DNA from: Pavona decussata
Taxonomy: Eukaryota
Direction: 5' to 3'
NCBI GenBank assembly: GCA_977016875.1
Contig: CDRNST010000082.1
Coordinates: 1,364,001-1,428,000, forward strand
Length of the DNA: 64,000 bases
In this document: piece after piece, positions 11,574 to 61,210 of the stretch
How the letters are laid out: the number at the start of each line of letters is the position of its first letter
Numbering within the stretch: the first letter of the stretch is position 1
The notes under the pieces: generated by a model
The model's database searches: none
What the model saw: the letters and a program-made list of their open reading frames with translations, nothing else
Told to the model about the DNA's origin: nothing
Position numbers and translations under genes: made by a program

Positions 11574-11930
11574 TTAAGTAGACAACAACGTGACTCCAAA
11601 AACAGCTTCTATCATGTTGTAGAAGACTTTTAAATCAGAATAATCGGTGAATTCCAAGTTGTAAACACGTCTGCTTGTTATAATGGAAGCAATCTGTCCC
11701 AGGTTCCCACTCTGGTAAGCTCCCACTCTCCGCTTGCGGCCGGCATTCTTCAAGGCACTGGAGACGAATCTTCCTGGCTGCACCATGCGGAGGTCTGGTA
11801 CAAGATGAAAAGAAAAGTAGATTAAAATAGCCTGAAATCAAAGCTGATAAACAAGATGTTTGTTTCGTGGAGGTTGTCATGGAGATGGCGATGAGAAATG
11901 GAAGTAGGTATTTGTAAATTCTTAGCCTTC

Positions 11931-11964
<34 letters not shown>

Positions 11965-12010
11965 TAAAATGGTAATAACTGAATAAATTTATTAAGAAGT
12001 CTATTTAGCC

Positions 12011-12042
<32 letters not shown>

Positions 12043-15000
12043 TTTATTAACGTGTCAAGAAATGTAGCTGAGGGAAGAAGTCCCCTCTACTAATAGTGGA
12101 CACCTAACTAAATTCTAGACTAGTAGACTAATTGGGGACAATAGTAATAAAGAATAAATAAGTGGATGAACACATAACAATAAACGTTAACTTTAGATAT
12201 AATATAGATATATGTACAGTGTTAAAAATATTTATATAACAAACAAAGGTGACAGCAATTTATGGGCCTTTTAGAAATACCCTCATCAATGTATAGATCT
12301 AAAACATCAGAAAATTTGTCTTAATTAAAATTTCAGCATGCCGAGAGAGCGCGATAAGCTAGCTATATTTCCTTTGTTAGTTCACTACGTAAATTAAACG
12401 AAAGATATTACTTTAAAACATCATGTTCTGCCTAACCTCAGGAAGATAAATACCGGGAAAACACATCAAAGTGGTCTTCCAACATGGCGGACGGTAATTT
12501 AAGGGTCACGTGATAGTGCACGAACTATAGAAACTCGTTAAAAACATTCTCTAAAAATCAAATGAGCCATTACAAACTTAGCTTAGTTACCTTTGAGATC
12601 AATGATCTTCTTTATTATCTCTTTGCCGTTTGATTTTTCCTCGGCGGCCTTTGATCTTAGTTCAAGTTTCAAAGCATCTTTCTTAAAATTTAGTTCTTGA
12701 AAATGAGGTTTTTTGTTTCCTAAATGAAGGCAAAGTCAAATGAGAAAGTCATTAGAAAGAACCACGTGACAAACAGGTTATTGCAACCAGCCTCTTCTCG
12801 AGCCATCTTTGTAGACCGGGAGAATGTGACGTCACCTGTTGAGCTAATTGGGGAGACATAGCCAGGACGTCATCGACTTCAGTACCAAGACCCAGATAGG
12901 CAACTCGGCTTGCTCGATAAGCGCAATAAGGTCTGGTAACGAGGAAGTATCGCAATGACTCCTTGTACAATAACCATAAGTTAATTTTAAGTTAAAAGTT
13001 ACTCCACTCGGCAGTTTGTAAAATCTTTGAAAATTCGAGTGATATTATCTATTTAATTCTGCCACATGTGACGACCTATAGAACGCAAAACATTTCAAGA
13101 ATTAAAAAAGGCCAAGAAGAGAAAGATCATCTGGAGACAACGTCCTGATATCTTCTGAGACCTGTGACCCAAAGAATTGTGGGATATAGCCAGTAGATTG
13201 GCGGAGTTGGACTATTCATATCAATGATGTTTGGAGAAAATATGTCAGGCAATGAGAAAGTTAACATTTGATGGTCTTTTTTTTTCGTGACTGTTACATA
13301 TGAATGAGTATTCGCTAAGTTTTTAACAGCATGATAGAATGATATTCTTATTAATTATTGGTTATACCTCGGTGTTTTGAGGTACAATCATGGCACAACT
13401 CACCACATTTCCCGGCCTTTTTTATTTCTTGTCAATTTAATTTTAATTACCAATTTTATCTAGCACATACATTTAGCCTCTGTTTTCTTATTAAGATTAC
13501 TATTACCTTTCTTTGAGTGAACGAATACATTTACTCCTTTGCAGACCTTTTCCACGGCCCGCCTTTGGTTAAACGTCCACATAGGCTTTGGAAATTCTGT
13601 GAACAACTGACGGTAGTTGAATGCTAGGGCTGTTGCTAGGATACTGCCAGTCACGTGAGCATAAGGCAACTCACTCATGGAGTAATGGTCACCAGGACAA
13701 ACAAGCACTGTTGTTCCTCCATCAACTAACTGATCCCATGCCTCCTCGGCGCTCCTTGATGAGGGAAGCGTGGGTGAGAAGCGCGCGTTTTGACATTTAA
13801 GGTAGATAAGTGGACCTCGGTAACGAATCTACAAATAAAAATTGTTTAGAACGTTGCACTAGAGAAATTTTACCTGTTGGAGGGGCAGTTTTTTCGTAGG
13901 GAGGGCACTGCATAAACTAGACAAAACAGCAACAGTGATTTCTATTAACTTTGCAAGAAACACTTGAACAAACAAGACCGAGTTGTAGAGTGATCTATCA
14001 GGATCAGCAATGAAGTAATAAAACAACTTCCAACATGCAAGGCATAACTTTGTCCAATGTTCGTTCAAACAAAAGTAAGCTTTGTCAGAGGCAAGACAAG
14101 CTAAGTGAAAATGGAAAGAAACGTTACAGTGTTTAAAGCAAGGTAAAGTTGTGTGCTGCATGATCAGAATTATAACGCAAACAAACAAAACAGAAACTAT
14201 AAACTATAATATGAAAACAGTAAATCTGGAGACAGTTTAAGTTAGCAAAGTGGTCTGATACGACAGTGGTTTACTCAAGAAATTACAACCACTCGCGGAA
14301 AGCCAAGTCTTATCCGCACATGGCCAAAAGAAGGATTAAAGTGATCAAACGTCTTGGATATGGTCACGAGAGTAACAACTACATCAGCTTCATCACGTCT
14401 TTTTCCAATACAACTAAGGAAAGTTGTCAAAACTCCTATACTTGAACACGACCCACCAAACGAACAAAGCGATAAAAATTTGTCGGCAATTTCATGAGGT
14501 AGGTGATGTCTTCCATAACCCCCCTACCCTAGACAAGGTGGGCCTACTTCAATTAAACTTCCCTAAATGAAATTTACTGCTACGTTATTATGATCTCTAC
14601 CTCTGGGGGCTGCCACTCTAGGTGGGTCCTACCGGCGACACTTTGGTCCCTAAGAAGAGATTCTCTTAGAGCGTTTAAATTGTAGCCAGGGAGCCCCTTC
14701 TCAAGGCTCTTTTTCTGTAGCTCATTTATAATCCACTCTTGATCGTGTTGCTCTCTTAGCTGTTGGTATTCTTCAGCTCCAATCTCCAGTGAATCTACTG
14801 CCATCTTTGTCAAAAAATTTTCAAATTGCATCTGCAAAAAACAGCTCTGATTTAATAATTTATTTATAACTTAGATCAGCCACTAAGTCAACTGGTTACC
14901 TTAATGGTTCGATTTCGCGCCCCTTATTTACCTTACACTCGAATTCCAACAAGCGCCGCTATACTGGTAAAGGCGTGACTTGCGCAAGACCCTTTTTCGC

Positions 15001-18000
15001 ATAATTGCCCTTACAACATAGTCAGATTAAACCTATTCACTCTGCAATCGTATTGTACAGTTTCCATTCGAATTGTGCTCGCTTAATTTTCATGAATAAT
15101 CAACGCATTGTAAAACTGTCTAAATGTGGTCATGGTACGCTCCGTATTCGTCATATCTACACAAAAGACATTCTACGATAAACGTTATGTCATGTGAAGG
15201 GGAGAAGATTGTTACAAATAAATACCATCTCCATCTTTTCTACAAATTAAACTTAGCTTTGCTATCAATATGTTGAATAGCAGAACAAGTATCCTCTTCG
15301 ATCTTGTGGAAAATGGTCTGATTTTTATCCAAGTGAAGCGATTTCGAAAGATAATTTTTAATTGTTGTTCACTTGGTGTATTTACACTCCTAAATGTTTA
15401 TGTCTAAAAGAAATGAGCCCCTGTCTCCGATAGGCACGCTATTGTTACGTCTCGCAACTCACATTGCAAACGGTGTAAAGTCACCTACGTCGGCGAAACA
15501 ACAGCTCCTGTAACTCATGAGGTGTGGAGCACATAGCGGGTACAAGATGAGACAACGATATCCACCAGGAATATTTTGACATATATTTAAAAACCCTGAA
15601 CAGTAGATAGAAATGCCTTATTTAAGCATAACATTCCCTTGAAAAATTCAATTAACGAACAAGCATCCCTGGGGACAGAAAGGCAATAAACACCTATGTC
15701 AGGTAGGCAATAAGCACTTATGTCAGACAGGCAATAAACACTTATGTCAAGCAGGCATTAAACACTTATTTCGGGCGGGCAATAAACACCTATGTCAACC
15801 AGGCCGTAAACGCCTATGAGGGTAAATTTTGCAAACCTCAGCATTCTGACGTAAATTCCCATACTCCTGTGCTGAGAAGGAAGCCAGCCTACTGCTGATA
15901 GATTGGGAATGCGGAAGCCACCGGAATGTGTCAATCATTGCCACTAACTCCACCCTTTGCTTCCGTTCCGTCAACAAGGAAGCCATTTCGTACGCGAGCA
16001 ACCCTCCGTACGAGTATCCACCGAGAAAGTATGGTCCATGGCGCTGCTCCTTGCGGATTAGTTTCACGTAATGTGTAGCAAGTTCACGAACTCCACCCCA
16101 GTCCTCACTCACTGCCGTTGGGTCGGTAAAGCCAAGTGCGTAGAAAGACACTAGATCCTACAAGTAAAGAAGAAATCAACTAAGTTAATTACTTGTAAAG
16201 TTATCAATTTCACAACCCGATATGAAATAACTGTAATTCCACGTTCGGTATGATTGGGTTATTACATTTCATGACATGGAATATGTGTTAAACACTTTAA
16301 AGTGTGTAAGAAATTCTAATCACACTCTCCTACTCTTATTTTACTCTAAACCGACAGGTTCGGTAAAACACTGAATTCAGCAGCAATCAACCTCATATGT
16401 TGGGCTATTACCTGGCCTTGAAATCCGGTGGATATAGGCACCAAGCTCATAGCATAGCGGTGTGATGGATGGACACAGAAGAACTTTATAGCTGAACCCT
16501 CGGGAGTGTAGAGCGGTATAACTTCTATCTGGCTTCCAGGCCCAGATGTATGCTTACTGGCCTCTGTGTGCGCATGCTCAAGTTCCAAGTTGTCACCATT
16601 TCCACGCTGCTCATTAGGCGACTGGCAATCGCTACCTCGTTTACTCAGAGAGGCAGCGATGTCTCTCGCGAGTTTCAATGGAGTGGTATCAGGTTGCATG
16701 AAGTAGAAAACCTGCAGCAACACATTTTTTGATCAGCTCAGATTACACAAAGTGTTTCAAATGTTCGTGCTCTCTGTCTACAAACGCAGGCGCTTCTCTT
16801 AATTAAAACTTGCCAAACCTCAATCCAGCAGAAAATCTCTGGAACATTATTAACAAGATTACATACACGGATTCAGTACCGAAACAATGGGGGAATTAAT
16901 TTGAATTCCTCTGTTGTCGAAAGTTTTCCCGAGGACAGTTCTACAGAAAATCAGTTTTGTCTCTTTCTGTGTGATTGATTCTGTTGTTTATCTTCGCCAC
17001 GTGTATTAATATGACGGACTCAGGCAATACTTACCTCAAAAGAGACTTGCAACGCTTTTTCAATGTTTGTTTTCATATTCACTGCAGCAGAGGAGTCCAC
17101 TCCGTAGCTGTACAAGCTCTTGTTTAGATCTGTCTCAGAAGGTGATGAAATTCCTGTCCATTCTGTTATTGCTACGCGAACATACTCGTTGACTAGCTCA
17201 GCTCTCTTTTTTTTATCCTTCTCCAGAATGATTCTTTGCGCCAGCGACTCTGTTGAGCTGATTGGATTGTCAAGAGTATTGATTTCCGCGGCGATGATGG
17301 ACAATCGAGGTGTTTTTCCCACACCTGGATTATTCTTTAGGTATCGCGGCCAATCTGCATCAAACAGAGCGATTTGACAACGATCTGGCTCCTCAGTTAG
17401 TACTTTGGCCATATATTTGGCCCCTGTAAGAAAAAAATCACAGGAAACAGGAACTATTACGGTCCCACTTTTACTAAACTCAATTACGCTATTGGCTCTC
17501 CTTTACAGCCCAACTCAAATACAATTGAAAAAAAAACTTTAAATATCTAACCGTACATAGTTAATCGATGGTCAATGAAACCAGTGAGTAATCAGCTGGT
17601 TAGTCAATGAATATTGCAGATAATCAATTATTAATTGATGACTAGTTAGGACAATAATTTTGTGGTCTGTTGATTATTCTTCGATGTGATTGATTAGTGA
17701 TGGATGTTATTTCAAATTTCTCATCGATTACCTATTGGTAATATTGTTGTCTAAAATGTCCAAGTACCCTTCACAACAGGAACAGAGGAACTTGGAGAAT
17801 TTTCGAAACTGAACAACCTAGATACCAGAGCATGAAGATTTGGTTGAGAGAAGTCAGCTAACCTCAACCGACGTCAGTAGGGTTATACCAATAATGTGTG
17901 TTGTTAATTCTACTTAACTAATTGTTCATGAACCGCGCAATTTTTTTCCGAAATCAATATAAAATGAGGTAAAATAATGTGATTTGTAGCCACGTGATGA

Positions 18001-24000: not shown

Positions 24001-27000
24001 TGATATGTGGAAAACGGTGGAGGTCAATTTCAGTTTCCCAACAATGCAGGCCTGAATACAATTCAGTCATCCTTGTCTTTTCCAAAAACGGATGGGTTTT
24101 GCTGGTTGTGCGTTTGTCACCAATTAAAATTGGTATTGTGGTTTGGGGTGGCGATTCCCTGTACCAAAAGCTGTTTTGCATCCATGGATAAGTGACGGAA
24201 CGAACAAACTTGGCCGATTGATTGTTCTGCACACATGCCCACTCTATGGGAAATCCCTGCGTATATAATTTGCACACGGTGTTCAGGAGAAACGTCCTGT
24301 GCTGGTCACTGACAGGTATTCTTTTACTTGGAAGAGTTGCGAAGACAACTGGCACTGCCCCGTCTTGAAGTTTTTCTTGCATAGCGATCTGTTTAACGTA
24401 GTGGGATAAAATCGGCTGCATGCTTATCTCTATGATCTGCTTGTAGCCGTCCTTCAGAAGATGCTTCACTGCAGGGAAGAACTGGACTGGACAGCGAATG
24501 TTTCGCCACCAGTAATCGCGGTCCAACTGTTCACCAGAGATGACTTCACCTTCCACAGTAGAATACATTGGAATCTTCGACAGCTGAGGTTTCAACTTCA
24601 TCTGCTTCGTTGCGGCTTGAAAAGGCTTCCTAATACATTCCATGTGTGAACTGTGAAATGCACGTCTTGTATCCAGAATGCGCCAGAAAGTCTGATTGGA
24701 GTGGATGGCTAAATGTTTTCCGAGTTCTTCGATTGACTGGGAATCGCCAGCCACCGTTACACTATTTGCATCATTTACTGCGGCGATGCTAAGCGAGGAG
24801 TTTAACTTCAGTTCTGTCATCAGAGACCTGGCGCTTTCTTCTGACATGCCCAGTGCAGCCATACCGCCGTTATAGGGACATTGATCTTGCAAAGTAGAGC
24901 GAGTCAATACCAGCTGAACAGCTTCCTTGAGGGTAATAATCCCAGCTATACAAGCGGCTGCAAATTCTCCCAGACTGTGGCCAGCAACGGCGGAGGGATG
25001 GATTTTCCAAGACATCAGAAGTTGTGCAGTTGCATATTGTATAGCAAACGTCGCCGGTTGAGCAATGGAAGTTTCTGAGATCCTTGATTTGCCTTCTGTA
25101 ACCATGAGCTCATCCATAAGTGACCAAGGCTTCCCCAAGTTTCGCACTAACTTACTGACGGTTATAATGGCCTCTTTAAAAACAGGCTCAGTTTCAATAA
25201 GTTGCCTCCCCATGGCATACCACTGGGACCCCTGTCCACCGAACATGAAAACTACTCTTGGGTCGGAGGACCTCACTTCGCCATGGGAAACCAGTTTTTC
25301 CACCCCAGTGGAATTATCAGCGTACTGTGTTAGGTACTCGGATGCCTCAGAAACAGTTCCGAAGGGAAGTGCCAGGCGATGTAGGAATTGACTGCGGCGT
25401 TCGTTCAAAGAATAGCATAAATCTTCTACGAAGGTCTTATCCACATTCTCGCGTTTGTCTTTAAGCCATTCGGAGTAAAGCTTTGCCATCCGCTTCAGAG
25501 CTTCTTGTGAACGGGCAGACATAGTGAGAACATGATTTAGACGTGGAGCCTTGTCTTCTTCAGAACGTTGCTGTGATGAAACTTCCTTACAGATAGCGTG
25601 TACATTAGAACCACCGAAACCAAAGGAGTTCACAGCAGCTATACGTGGTTTCTCATTTTCTGTGATCCAAGGCTCGTTGCTTTGTTGAACGACAAGTCCT
25701 CTCTCTTCTAATTTCAGCTTGGGATTCAATACATGCACGTTGACAGTTGGGACAAATCTCTTCTTTTTAATCATCAAAGCGACTTTGATAAGTCCAGCCA
25801 GCCCAGAAGTAGATTCCGTGTGATTTAGGTTTGACTTCACAGATCCAATTCGTAGCTTTCGTATGGGGTTTTTAGTTCTTCTGGTGTAAGTGTCTGCTAT
25901 TGAAGCAACCTCTATCACGTCTCCAATGGCAGTACCAGTTCCGTGTGCCTCAAAGTAATCCACGTCTTCTACACTCACGCCTGACTGCTCGAGAACCATT
26001 CTTGATAGTTCAGCTTGTATCTTTGCACTTGGAGCCGTTATTGGCACAGCATTTTTACCATCGCTGTTCATACCACAGCCAATTATGTGGCAATATTCGT
26101 CGTCTTTGTCACTCAAAGCTGCATCGGAAAGCTTAAGAATGACAGCTGCAAATCCTTCTCCCCTTCCATAGCCATTTCCAGAAGCATCAAAGCTCTTTGA
26201 GCGCCCATCAGGTGCCAAAAGACCAGCCATGCTAGAAACCATTTGCACGCAATAGTTAATGACAATGTTGGGTGCGCAAACAATGGCTACATTGCAGTCT
26301 CCGTTGTGCAAGTTATCGCATGCAAGTTTGAGTGCAGTCAAAGATGAAGAGCATGCAGTATCAACTGCAATGCTTGGTCCTGTTAGGTTTAGACAAAAGG
26401 AGACTCTGTTGGCGAGAATTGATCCTGCCATTCCTGTTGATGAAAATTTGTCGATTCTCTGATAATTTGATGGGTCTGATACCAGATGATTTCCGTACTC
26501 TAGAGTCATTACACCGACAAAAACCCCTGTTTTGCACTTCTGAAGATCCTCGAGCCTCATTCCAGCGTCCTCAATGGCCTCATACACGACCTCAAGGAGA
26601 ATTCTTTGTTGAGGATCCATCCCACGAGCCTCCTGACTAGATATACCAAAGAAACTGTTGTCAAAAGTTTGGATTTCTTCCAGGTAGGACCCATTAACTG
26701 CACAGTGGCGTCCACTAACGAAGCGCTTGGGGTGATAATACTTAAAGAAAGTCTCATGCAAACCCGCTCTGTTCTGGGGAAATGCTCTGATCGAACTCTT
26801 CCCCTGTTCAAGTAAATTCCAAAACATATCCTTGCTGTTGGCTCCAGGAAACCTGCAACTGATGCCAATGATAGATAGTGCAGGTCGCTTTGACTTGACC
26901 TGTCGTTGTGGTGCGTCGCAATCTGGTACTTTAAGGTACTTTTCCTGCATTCCTTTCTTAACATTAAGCAGTCTGTTCAATTCATCCTCAGCATAAAATT

Positions 27001-29497
27001 TGTCAATAACGTCGAAGAATAACGTGACAACAGGCGGGAAAATTACGAAAGCATGAATAAGTCCAAGGGCAAACACCAGAGGGACGAGTTGGAAGAAAAT
27101 ATCTTGGAGACTTGGATAAATAAACCCTAGTGATAAGGATCCAGATATCTCCAGTAATGCTGCTGCTATTACGGGCCCCGAAACAGCGTAAAAAGTTTCA
27201 ATTGTGCGCTGGGCGATCTTCTGCTTTCCTGAAAATGTGAACGAATAGGCCATTTGAAGGCTAAAATTGAGGGCCAAGACAACTGAAAAGACCAAGGAGA
27301 TAAAGGAAATGGGATTGAGGTGAATTCTGCAGGCCTCCATAATGCTCACTGTCTCAAAAACAAGTAGGTCAAATGTTACTGCTAGGTAAGCACTAATCCA
27401 AAAACTTGAGCTTGAGAGCAAACAAAATACAAACACAACAACGGAGGCAGTAACAAGAACAAAAACTGCCTCTTTCTTCAACAAAAACAGATCATCAATT
27501 TCAACAAATTTCTCAGAGACCGGTGCAGCCTTCAATGAAGATGGCGTGGATAACTTCTCTCTTAGTTTCTCTAATGCTCGCCTATCCCCTTTAAAGTGGT
27601 TGTGCAGTACCATATGTAGACGGATACGAGATGCCATTAGTCGGAAATGATAGTCTTCAAAACGTACGTCTCGTTGATAATAGACGCTGGAGGGTTGATT
27701 AAGAAAACTTTTCAAGCACAGGTAGAATTCTGAATTCAAGCAGCTAGTGTTCTGTTGCTTTGCCCAAAGTAGTAAAGCAACCATCCAACACGATGATTTT
27801 CTGTGACTATAGGAAGCCTCCCCTAGAGTTCTACAAATGGTGATGATTTCATTCTGCACGGTTTGGTGTGAGTATTCAACCTTCTCAGAGAAAACGATGC
27901 TCACGTCGGTTTCGTTTCCAAAAAAATTTTCTTGGGCTTCATTAAACTTTCTAAAGTTGTCATCTCGCTGATAAAGGTTTTGAGTGGTTCCCGCTCTCCC
28001 TCCAGATCGTGAGACAGAAAGCACACACAAACTGACTATGCCAGCCAGAATTATGACTGCAATGACTTTACCAGCAAGTGACATTAGCATCTTAACAACG
28101 CTTTCCCGAAAGGTTCGAAGTGTAACTTGTAGTTGTTGTATGGGTCCTCCGCCGAAGCTTGTAACGCTAACGAATGGTGATCGTCTACTACAGGAATGCA
28201 AACACAAAGTTTTAGCTGACTGACTCTTTAAGGACGATACCAAAGTGACCGTTATCATGACAGATGCAACCGAAACAAGAACATAAGCTACCAGTGCCAC
28301 GAGGAAGAACCTTGAAATCACTTCAAACGAAGACTTGATTACAATTCCTAAAAGAATTGTTCCGCACAATGATGACAATACGTGGACGATCCCCGCTCTA
28401 GTAACGCAGCTGCTGACTCGATGTTCAAGCGATTTTATTTCCTTTTGCCGCTCCCATTCTCCTAAGAAGAGAATTACGTCTGACGCTACCTTTCCCAATA
28501 GCAGAAACGGAATGAACAACGTAGTTGGAGAAAGGGAAATACTTGCCATTGAAACAATACCAGCAAAACACAGCAGGGGTGACAGAACAGACGAGAATAA
28601 AAGAAAGACGGTTGTAAGGCAATTAAGAATTGTAGAAGAAAAATAGGTAACAGCAAACGCTAATGCAATCATTGCAAGTGCTGATAAATAAGGCAATTTC
28701 AGCTCCAGTTTCAGGACGTTTTGCAAAACGTCTGTTTCTGCTTTTCCAGTCTTAAAGGAGAGCGATGCACATTTTAAGCGGTGGCGTATTGACAAGACGA
28801 GACGCTCAAAAGATCTTTCAAAGCTAACGACTTCCTGGTCTTCTTCGTCGGTGGTTGCCTTTCTGAGAAAGTAAACGATTCGAAGAGCATCAGCCCGGGC
28901 CGTTAAAGGATCTGTTTTGTTTTCTACTCGAAAATTACTGATCATCTCCCGAAAAGAAGATTGACCAGTTTCACTACCTGGCAACGCTCTGGTAATTGTC
29001 GATTTTTTAACCAGAATAGAAGAAAGGTTGCTCAGATGTTCAAAGTGATCGCCAGCGAACTCCAAAGGGCTGCTGATAACACAGTCTTGCTTGACCGACG
29101 TTTTGCTGGTGTTTTGTGGAACCTGTTGCCTAAAACATAACTTTTGGTAACCGCTGATGTTCAAAACAGCCTTGTGTACGAAAATTGCGTCTTTCAAACA
29201 ATCTCCAGTTAAGATATTTTGGCCATGTTTAGCAGTCATTATGATTTGTTCCCGCCTTGCTTCAAGTAGTGGGAAGAATTGCGCTGCATGGCTTAAGTCT
29301 TGCCTGGACTGGCTATCAATCACGGTGAAATGTTCAACCGAAGGCTTTTCGATACTAACACGACTCAGTCCCAGACAGCATGTAACAACAACAATAAGAG
29401 AAGCTATTAAGATAGCCGATGGTCTTCGAGCTAGAAAAAAGCCGAATTTCTCGAACAAGCTTTCGTAGCCAAAAAGGATTCTGTAGCTAATTCCCAT
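11574..29497 (-). CDS. Copy A: Patched/sterol-sensing 12-TM domain fused to a type I PKS/FAS-like synthase (KS-AT-DH-psiER-KR-ACP-TE) with a PH-like C-terminus; about 3535 aa
   Basis: Hand-spliced GT-AG exons, all phase-compatible: 29497-23846, 23566-23410, 22678-20235, 19719-19557, 18839-18561, 17423-17035, 16711-16412, 16157-15837, 14831-14601, 13828-13507, 12719-12591, 11794-11574. Motifs: KS DTACSSS / EAHGTGT / NLNHTE; AT GHSLG / RAFHS; DH DHALIQGGAVM and HPSILDACLQ; KR GGLGGFG, VLRD, YCACN; ACP GVDS; TE GYSYG, MID, GDHY. The true start codon is uncertain. Confidence 0.92.
11931..12041. repeat. (AAT)n microsatellites
   Basis: Two TAA runs at about 11931-11960 and 12011-12041, in the last intron of copy A. 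Confidence 0.85.
12011..12280 (-). mobile_element. Probable LINE 3' end (stem-loop, AATAAA, (ATT)n tail)
   Basis: Minus strand reads ...ggtgtccactattagtagaggggacttcttccctcagctac...gacacgttaataaagttattattatt. The 5' boundary is approximate. Confidence 0.45.
15681..15820. repeat. 24-bp minisatellite, about 6 copies, in intron 8 of copy A
   Basis: Contiguous units of aggcaataaacacYtatgtcaRNN with no spacers. Confidence 0.9.
19065..19400 (+). mobile_element. tRNA-derived SINE-like repeat (1.5 units)
   Basis: A-box tgctcagtggcagagc, stem tccga..tcgga and B-box gttcgattcc at 19303-19366. The tail (cgaat.tgcctgt) is repeated at about 19118 and 19380. Confidence 0.55.
23846..26880 (-). other. KS-AT and start of DH of copy A (same exon as the membrane domain)
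   Basis: LSIIGISCRFPG, MDPQQR, DTACSSSL, GYGRGEG, EAHGTGT, NSFGFGGSNVH, FGGQGSQW, GHSLGE, RAFHS, HPFL...DHALIQGG. Confidence 0.95.
27010..29497 (-). other. Patched/NPC1-like (SSD, RND-fold) membrane domain of copy A
   Basis: Hydrophobic pattern 1 TM + large Cys-containing loop (YQKLC..CVISSPLEF) + 5 TM + 1 TM + large loop + 5 TM. The last helix, LGLIHAFVIFPPV, resembles Patched-family TM12. Confidence 0.85.
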
Positions 29498-29703
29498 TCG
29501 TAATTCATTGATAGTAGTGATAACTCCGCAGCCAAAGTAACGCTTCTGTTGTGTTGTATGGCAATCAAAAGACCTGCGTGTGAAAACAGAGGCGATGTTA
29601 TGAATCAGGAACGAAACTCTTAAGGTGAGCTCGCTAGATCTCTCTGCTCAAACGATTTCTACTCCACTCCAGGTATTCCATTTATTTTCTAGCGTGTTTT
29701 GAC

Positions 29704-59854: not shown

Positions 59855-61210
59855 TAACACCTTGCCACCTCGCCTAGACCAGGTGCCATCAAAGCTCACT
59901 GGTACTTCAGCTATTGTGTTCTCATTGTTATCTTACTCGCTCATCTTTAGAAATGCAAGTTTTCTAGCTTCAGCTCTATTCTTGGCCAGTTTTTCTCGGA
60001 TGACATCAGTGTGGGCCTCTAAGAGAGCATCCTCACGGTGTGCGACAAATGCAGACTGCAGACTTGCAGACTTGCAGACCTGCAGACCTGCAGACCTGCA
60101 GACCTGCAGACTTGCAGACCTGCAGACTTGCAGACTTGCAGACCTGCAGACCTGCAGACTTGCAGACCTGCAGACTTGCAGACTTGCAGACTTGTAGACT
60201 TGCAGACTCAACATACTGGCCTTTCCCAATTCATTTTAAAAATAATATTGTGTAACCTCCGCCATTCCATATCATGCGCTGTCCGCTTGGTACGCTTTGA
60301 TACTTGGCTACTTTCACGATTGTCCTTCAGGAATAAAATTCGTACGCGCGCCAGTTTTGAGAAAACGTTGTCAAACTATATAGCAAACAGCATAATAAGG
60401 GCTAGGTTCTGACAAAAATACAATTTTAGTGATTTTTTTTTTATTTTCTAAAATATCAGGATCGGGTAAACTCTCCGACGAACTTGAATTTATCGGGTAT
60501 CGAACGCCTGGCAAGAACGAATTAGCTGCACAGCGTAATTATTCAAAAGACATTAATAGGGCTTTTCCGATACTTTGATTGGTTATCGAGATATCCGAGT
60601 TCAAAGTTAGAATAGCAAAAAAAATTATGTAGACGTGCTGCTCAAGTGGTCGCCATGCCAAAGTTAGTTTAAATTTAAAAATTCCTGCGCGAGATTTTAG
60701 CTCATAAAGTTTCGTAAACGACACATGCCTCCACATGAGGGGATTATATCACTCGATCGTACTAAATGCCGCGAGCTAGTGAATTCTCGTTAAATTCCAA
60801 AGTCGCGAAAATCCGGAAGTATGCAGGTCGGCAAGTCTTCACGGTTGTCCTGAAGGACAACCTTGGAAGTAGCCAAGTAGCCTTAAAGCGTACTAAGCGG
60901 ACAGCGCATGATGTGGAATGGCGGAGGTTACACACTATTATTTTTAAAATGAATTGGAAAAGGCCAGTATGTTGAGTCCATCAAGTCTGCAAGTCTGCAG
61001 GTCAGCAGGTCTGCAAGTCTGCAAGTCTGCAGGTCTGCAAGTCTGCAGTCTGCATTTGTCGCACACCGGCATCCTCATGTCTATACCATGCATATTGAAA
61101 CACTGAAAGGCACATCTAACACTTCACAGAGTTTGGCTATTCCTTCGCTTCTTAAACCCATTTCAAAGGCACCATAAACAACTCTTCGATTTAAATCTTT
61201 TCCTTGGATA
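59855..61210 (-). pseudogene. Kolobok/Mutator-like transposase remnant split by the foldback element
   Basis: Removing 60036-61068 and one TSD rejoins DLNRRVVYGAFEMG..GIAKLCEVLDVP..WYRHEDALLEAH..IAEVPVSFDGTWSRRG (DGTW catalytic motif). Stops and frameshifts are present. Confidence 0.7.
60036..61068. mobile_element. Foldback/MULE-like non-autonomous element with long modular TIRs
   Basis: Termini cggtgtgcgacaaatgcagactgcagac / gtctgcagtctgcatttgtcgcacaccg. Subterminal 8-bp (tgcagacY)n arrays of unequal length and about 100 bp of further inverted unique sequence. Perfect 9-bp TSD gcatcctca (60027-60035 / 61069-61077). Confidence 0.92.

Follow-up and report, generated by a model that had tools for sequence, protein, structure and literature searches.

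A predicted PH-fold domain behind the thioesterase of Patched-like polyketide synthases in the coral Pavona decussata

The Patched-like polyketide synthases (PKSs) of Pavona decussata carry an additional tail after the thioesterase (TE), which is transcribed and spliced as part of the synthase and is predicted to adopt a pleckstrin homology (PH) fold of the phospholipase C (PLC)/ELMO type. Megasynthases of the FAS and PKS types are generally taken to be soluble and to finish with the releasing domain. The best explanation of the findings as a whole, with a probability of about one-half, is a separate, expressed PH-fold domain that would lead the releasing end back to the membrane. The analyzed DNA, referred to here as the window, is a stretch of 64,000 nucleotides; coordinates refer to the window unless another contig or locus is named.

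The window contains two tandem PKS genes on the minus strand, copy A at ~29647-11574 and copy B at ~58309-40902. In copy A, ~175 residues lie between the catalytic His of the TE (motif GDHY, 13685-13687) and the stop codon. About 24 of them complete the TE, and the other 151 form the extra tail; the Pfam Thioesterase model, placed on contiguous relatives, stops ~20 residues past the His, at position 212 of 226. The original prediction of a conserved extra domain beyond the TE His, spread over three exons and kept in copy B, stands in all respects except its length, which had been put at about 130 residues after the His. The tail is reached through a short, Pro-rich, and conserved linker (FPEFPRP). 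The 3' part of copy A is organized as follows.

14601-16157, minus strand: upstream TE exons, 16157-15837 (GYSYGG) and 14831-14601 (lid), on the same RNA contig as the tail
13613-13828, minus strand: first part of the TE-His exon, with the catalytic His of GDHY and the last TE helix (RNA joints; Pfam Thioesterase on contiguous relatives)
13506-13612, minus strand: tail piece 1, the end of the TE-His exon, with the Pro-rich linker, the N-terminal helix, and strand 1 (GVNVFVHSKKG) (translation; joint 12718/13506; model helix 14-25 and strand 27-32)
12591-12718, minus strand: tail exon 2, with strands 2 to 4, of which strands 3 and 4 are joined by the variable loop (joints on both sides; model strands 41-48, 53-58, and 71-76)
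11574-11794 (coding 11794-11577), minus strand: tail exon 3, with strand 5, the helix between strands 5 and 6, the RKRR patch, strands 6 and 7, and the C-terminal helix (translation, RNA joints, and model)
11574-11576, minus strand: stop codon, at the end of tail exon 3

Contigs from two runs of the same species, which are only guessed to be RNA and whose intron-free, joined form has the appearance of cDNA, connect 11794/12591, 12718/13506, 13828/14601, and 14831/15837. All four joints read CT..AC on the plus strand, corresponding to GT..AG for the copy A gene. A single RNA-type contig of 1100 nucleotides begins at 16098, on the upstream side of the TE Ser motif, and extends to 11639 within the last exon. 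Small contigs from declared coral RNA-Seq runs map onto the exons, and sequence of the window is present in runs that include coral metatranscriptomes. Four cDNA-type JGI contigs from related corals (L021, L022, L028, and L031) contain the tail in one open frame, and in three of the four this frame also holds almost the whole TE. Given the RNA-type joints and the JGI contigs with both parts in one frame, the tail is spliced to the TE, as had been assumed for the last exons.

The transcript data show some further features. The RNA-type contigs of runs X1 and X2 depart from the window at position 11581, 5 bases before the stop codon, and still read Ser-Thr-stop in frame with a different 3' untranslated region; they could represent an allele or a very close paralogue. 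The metatranscriptome contig L021 contains an ACP-region frame (176-943) and a TE-plus-tail frame (1231-2448), which lie ~290 bases apart in different frames. It looks like a partly spliced transcript, as if one intron had been retained, and still links the ACP to the tail. The last intron of copy A contains long (ATT)n/(AAT)n microsatellites (11921-12050). Elsewhere in the window, a 24-base tandem repeat at 59936-60409 can be read on both strands, in several frames, as units of SASLQVCR or ADLQTCRP. Open frames resembling mobile-element genes occupy 1956-4442, upstream of the PKS genes. They comprise a 211-codon frame followed by a poly-Gln stretch on the plus strand (1956-2813) and further frames on the minus strand (3317-4442) with the sequence GDPAYPL, which we take to be reminiscent of Harbinger/PIF-type transposases.

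Copy B contains the same three tail segments, which are free of internal stops in both copies.

43017-43121, minus strand: copy B tail piece 1 (translation)
42444-42571, minus strand: copy B tail exon 2 (translation)
40902-41122, minus strand: copy B tail exon 3 with the stop codon (translation; locus L004)

The amino acid identities between copies A and B are 69%, 52%, and 86% for tail pieces 1, 2, and 3 (43017-43121, 42445-42570, and 40905-41120 in copy B), respectively, exon 3 being the most conserved. Summed over the three pieces, dS is 0.64 and dN is 0.15, with a dN/dS ratio of 0.24, and a blastn comparison of the introns of the two copies gives no similarity. Judged from these sequences, the tail is under purifying selection and is not a product of chance. 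Genome-wide, seven TE-His exons and seven last exons are found, paired one to one on the same strand, so that the tail is present in all seven family members, each with open frames. Six of the pairs are located on contig C82 (1255378-1707405, ~450 kb; loci L001-L009 together with C56), some in opposite orientation. The seventh pair, on contig C56 (1329041-1358999), has diverged to 36% identity in the last exon and lies downstream of another Patched-like PKS body, whose first open frame comprises 1990 codons. Two relatives on ENA contigs, with 34 to 45% identity, show KR, ACP, and TE exons upstream of the same three-exon tail.

The alignments, which include the last exon of L002, give the conserved pattern [FY]xQ+xAvxKf..GVxVFLHS+KG for tail piece 1 and LRxVxPG...GN..iaSvvT..RvYNxEF...DlK.F..miEAvfGV for exon 3; exon 2 is variable and ends in kkIIDLK. 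Exon 2 fragments of L047, L049, and L008 were misplaced by MAFFT and left out of the folded alignments. In the distant relative L049 (9591-10014), a long GA-rich microsatellite that translates as RERERE/TETETE immediately precedes the last tail exon.

At the other end of the protein, Pfam assigns to copy A a weak sterol-sensing/Patched-like region, followed by KS, AT, DH, KR, ACP, and TE.

~26900-29500, minus strand: Patched/RND-like N-terminal region of copy A with 12 hydrophobic segments, located before the KS in the same open frame of 1947 codons (Pfam and hydropathy)

The match to the Pfam sterol-sensing model (E value of 1.4e-4, 22.2 bits) falls just under the curated cut-off of 22.3 bits. 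Hydropathy analysis of the N-terminal ~900 residues gives 12 hydrophobic segments arranged as 1+5/1+5, with two large loops and with peaks at residues 77-95, 316-465, 528-546, and 727-884 of the first open frame. The pattern, together with the weak sterol-sensing match, agrees with the proposal that the synthase would also be anchored at its N-terminal end. With 12 segments ahead of the KS, the synthase part should face the side where the N terminus lies, a side we infer to be the cytosol.

The TE motifs GYSYGG, with the Ser nucleophile, and GDHY, with the His, are present in both copies of the window, and the Pfam Thioesterase model (PF00975) matches contiguous relatives with an E value of 2e-18. 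The TE is apparently intact and of the FAS type: the thioesterase end of animal FAS likewise shows the nucleophile motif GYSYG and a GDH His followed by one helix. Human FASN has this arrangement and stops ~30 residues after the His, whereas the coral synthases carry 151 residues more.

The fold of the tail was modeled on natural contiguous relatives (L021, L022, L028, L031, and P0024-P0028) standing in for the window's own protein. AlphaFold2 was run on residues 163-313 of P0026 with a shallow alignment of 34 rows, mostly fragments; the P0026 tail is 66%, 52%, and 83% identical to the three pieces of copy A. The resulting model has a mean pLDDT of 79.3 and a pTM of 0.75. It comprises seven strands (residues 27-32, 41-48, 53-58, 71-76, 80-85, 113-118, and 122-127) and three helices, one N-terminal (14-25), one between strands 5 and 6 (90-95), and one C-terminal (130-150), with low pLDDT in loop 61-67 between strands 3 and 4. 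A second model, of the P0025 tail together with the TE, gives the same secondary structure at a pLDDT of 85 to 92. Here, the TE core stays below a pLDDT of 50 with a shallow alignment, and the helical lid of the TE is confidently modeled. The modeled tail shows the features of the PH superfold, a seven-strand antiparallel sandwich closed at one end by the C-terminal helix, as well as those of PLC-type PH domains, an additional helix ahead of strand 1 and a short one between strands 5 and 6.

Structural comparisons of the model point in the same direction. The best 50 Foldseek matches in the PDB are all PH or PH-like, with E values down to 5e-5 and TM scores by query of 0.5 to 0.67; PLCgamma1/2, ELMO1, ISP1/3, Sbf1, and PLCdelta1 are at the top. 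VIA-align, which is independent of Foldseek, aligns the PH domain of PLCgamma1 over 126 residues with a Z score of 14.7 and an rmsd of 2.6, covering model residues 13-151, followed by PLCepsilon (Z score of 12.8), PLCdelta1 (12.6), and ISP1 (12.0). Its best 50 matches are likewise PH or PH-like, among them Ran-binding, PTB, and WH1/EVH1 domains. A fold search of the ESM Atlas returns clusters of PLC eta, delta, and gamma, of ELMO, and of Mcp5_PH at TM scores of 0.63 to 0.70, and a language-model search, to be taken as a lead only, returns PH_14, ISP, PH_12, and PH clusters at 0.8 to 0.89. The models thereby predict a PH fold of the PLC/ELMO type for the tail, with PLC-type PH domains as the nearest solved structures. 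The resemblance to this type, initially read from the letters alone, is thus recovered at the level of the predicted fold.

No PH family is assigned to the tail by methods operating on sequence. In Pfam, neither the 151-residue tail as a contiguous sequence, at E values of up to 10, nor the single exons match any family, and NCBIfam gives nothing relevant for the tail. A profile search of the PDB finds only the PH domain of Sbf1 (1v5u), a weak match with an E value of 0.44; with 'IIDLKDLRMVQPG...ALK', the tail is similar to PH domains around strands 4 and 5, as in this match. The signature Trp of the C-terminal helix is absent from all aligned sequences, which have Phe/Tyr instead, the helix reading DLKxFYxMIEAVFGV. 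No sequence method links the tail to the PH domains of PLC, and the identity in the structural matches is 10 to 16%. A profile of the last exon, searched against a large protein library of 1.84 billion representatives, found no full-length protein and no other protein context. The search returned 23 matches, 21 of which are real and represent exon-sized open reading frames of ≤120 residues. The two long matches, P0021 and P0022, were taken as spurious; each of their stretches (11 and 5, respectively) covers 22 to 23 profile positions.

Among known domains, the N-terminal PH domains of the PLCs (PLCgamma1/2, PLCdelta1 [1mai], PLCepsilon, and PLCbeta) are thus the closest in structure, at TM scores by query of 0.6 to 0.7, and the likeness extends to the helices before strand 1 and between strands 5 and 6. 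In contrast to them, the tail has neither a Pfam PH match nor the Trp of the C-terminal helix, and whereas the PLC domain stands at the N terminus of a lipase, the coral tail stands at the C terminus of a synthase. The inositol phosphate-binding Lys/Arg residues of PLCdelta1 presumably have no counterparts at the same positions in the tail. The canonical phosphoinositide motif K-Xn-(K/R)-X-R across strands 1 and 2 does not occur in the aligned tails. The strand 1-2 loop follows the pattern HS[KR][KR]G[NS][KR]xPH[FY]; it is basic, with His or Tyr where Arg is expected, and reads HSKKGNKKPHF with His at the Arg place. The RKRR patch between strands 5 and 6 is confined to the main clade. In all lineages, the tail carries a net charge of +9 to +19, compared with -15 to +4 for what precedes it in these proteins (the TE, plus the linker in P0025). 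The conserved positive charge would fit an acidic surface, for example, the cytosolic leaflet, and is the sole argument for the binding of acidic lipids. Most PH domains are not specific phosphoinositide binders, and many bind proteins rather than lipids.

The proposed mechanism starts from the 12 membrane helices, which would put the entire PKS at the cytosolic face. The strongly basic PH-fold tail would then dock on the acidic cytosolic leaflet, either via general charge attraction or via a phosphoinositide. Through this docking, the TE as the product-releasing end would come to lie at the membrane again, next to the Patched-like domain of the same protein, and the hydrophobic product may be released into the bilayer or the transporter instead of the cytosol. 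A putative membrane or phosphoinositide role of the tail is plausible. An analogy, with no homology implied, is offered by mycobacteria, in which a PKS is coupled to an RND exporter: the releasing end of PpsE is held at the RND-type membrane protein MmpL7, and the lipid product is passed on directly. PpsE and MmpL7 are two interacting proteins, in contrast to the single polypeptide of the coral, whose return to the membrane is proposed to proceed via the PH domain. A more elaborate version of the mechanism appears rather unlikely: here, the tail would be a specific lipid-recognizing PH domain that closes the loop, the Patched-like domain anchoring one end of the protein and the PH domain the other, so that the TE hands the finished polyketide directly into the protein's own sterol-sensing-like cavity. 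The enzyme would then be both synthase and exporter in one self-contained unit, and the PH domain would in addition determine the organelle membrane on which it works.

The alternative that survives best takes the PH-fold tail as a protein-docking module instead of a lipid binder. The partner could be a cytosolic loop of the protein's own Patched-like domain, the partner subunit of the PKS dimer, or another protein. The PH domain of ELMO1 and the PH-like domains of Toxoplasma ISP1/ISP3 are high-ranking matches in the Foldseek, VIA-align, and language-model searches and have an N-terminal helical extension in common with the tail, although no relation to it is detectable at the sequence level; they act through protein contacts. 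PH-like domains of ELMO1, ISP1/ISP3, and Tfb1/p62 (TFIIH type) are protein binders, and all of these are among the close structural matches. The missing lipid motif speaks for the same reading, as does the distribution of the most invariant residues (PG, GN, R..YN.E, and EA), which lie in exon 3 and not in the basic strand 1-2 loop. The high positive charge across all lineages, however, is more typical of binding to acidic membranes, and protein docking is regarded as a tentative reading.

Considerably less probable is an action of the tail on the TE itself, as a cap, a gate, or a holder of the hydrophobic product that controls chain release and not location. The position of the tail directly behind the TE, with only the short conserved linker in between, and its presence in every family member are compatible with such a function. 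Against it, a helical lid is already part of the TE (exon at 14601-14831), and PH sandwiches are not known to have a hydrophobic cavity for lipid tails. Finally, a separate small gene or a decaying remnant is nearly excluded by the RNA evidence: one contig starts upstream of the Ser motif of the TE and reaches the last exon, and cDNA-type contigs hold almost the whole TE and the tail in one frame. All seven copies also have open frames, and the low dN/dS ratio between copies A and B speaks against it as well; only the short gene models of other corals speak in its favor.

These models belong to the closest named proteins, which come from Orbicella, Pocillopora, and Acropora. Separate "uncharacterized proteins" made up of the TE end and the tail are listed by NCBI for Orbicella faveolata (P0024; LOC110040258, 349 amino acids), Pocillopora meandrina (P0027; 346 amino acids), and Acropora palmata (P0041; LOC141883774, 136 amino acids). 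The Orbicella and Pocillopora models, the two that were read, open with a Met immediately behind the catalytic Ser and therefore look like truncated predictions of a large PKS gene, which argues against genes in their own right.

The PKS family of the window has itself been noticed only recently. According to a 2026 preprint on Palythoa, which treats the same gene family, most cnidarian PKS proteins contain a patched domain (IPR003392) combined with KS, AT, DH, KR, and TE; in its main text, no domain after the TE is described, and neither pleckstrin nor PH is mentioned (doi 10.64898/2026.04.08.717340). A literature search for a PH domain linked to a PKS found none. With respect to the papers searched, the tail represents a known fold at an undescribed place, on a recently noticed enzyme family. 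Gene models that cut the tail off, together with profile databases that are blind to the domain, may explain its absence from the one published description of the family that was found.

In these corals, an animal enzyme family thus has an anchor of 12 membrane helices at its start and, as predicted, a membrane-targeting type of fold at its end. If the PH domain does bring the TE to the bilayer, a hydrophobic product would be made and handed over without leaving the membrane. The tail of 151 residues also offers a small and easily expressed handle on the location and the partners of these uncharacterized coral enzymes.
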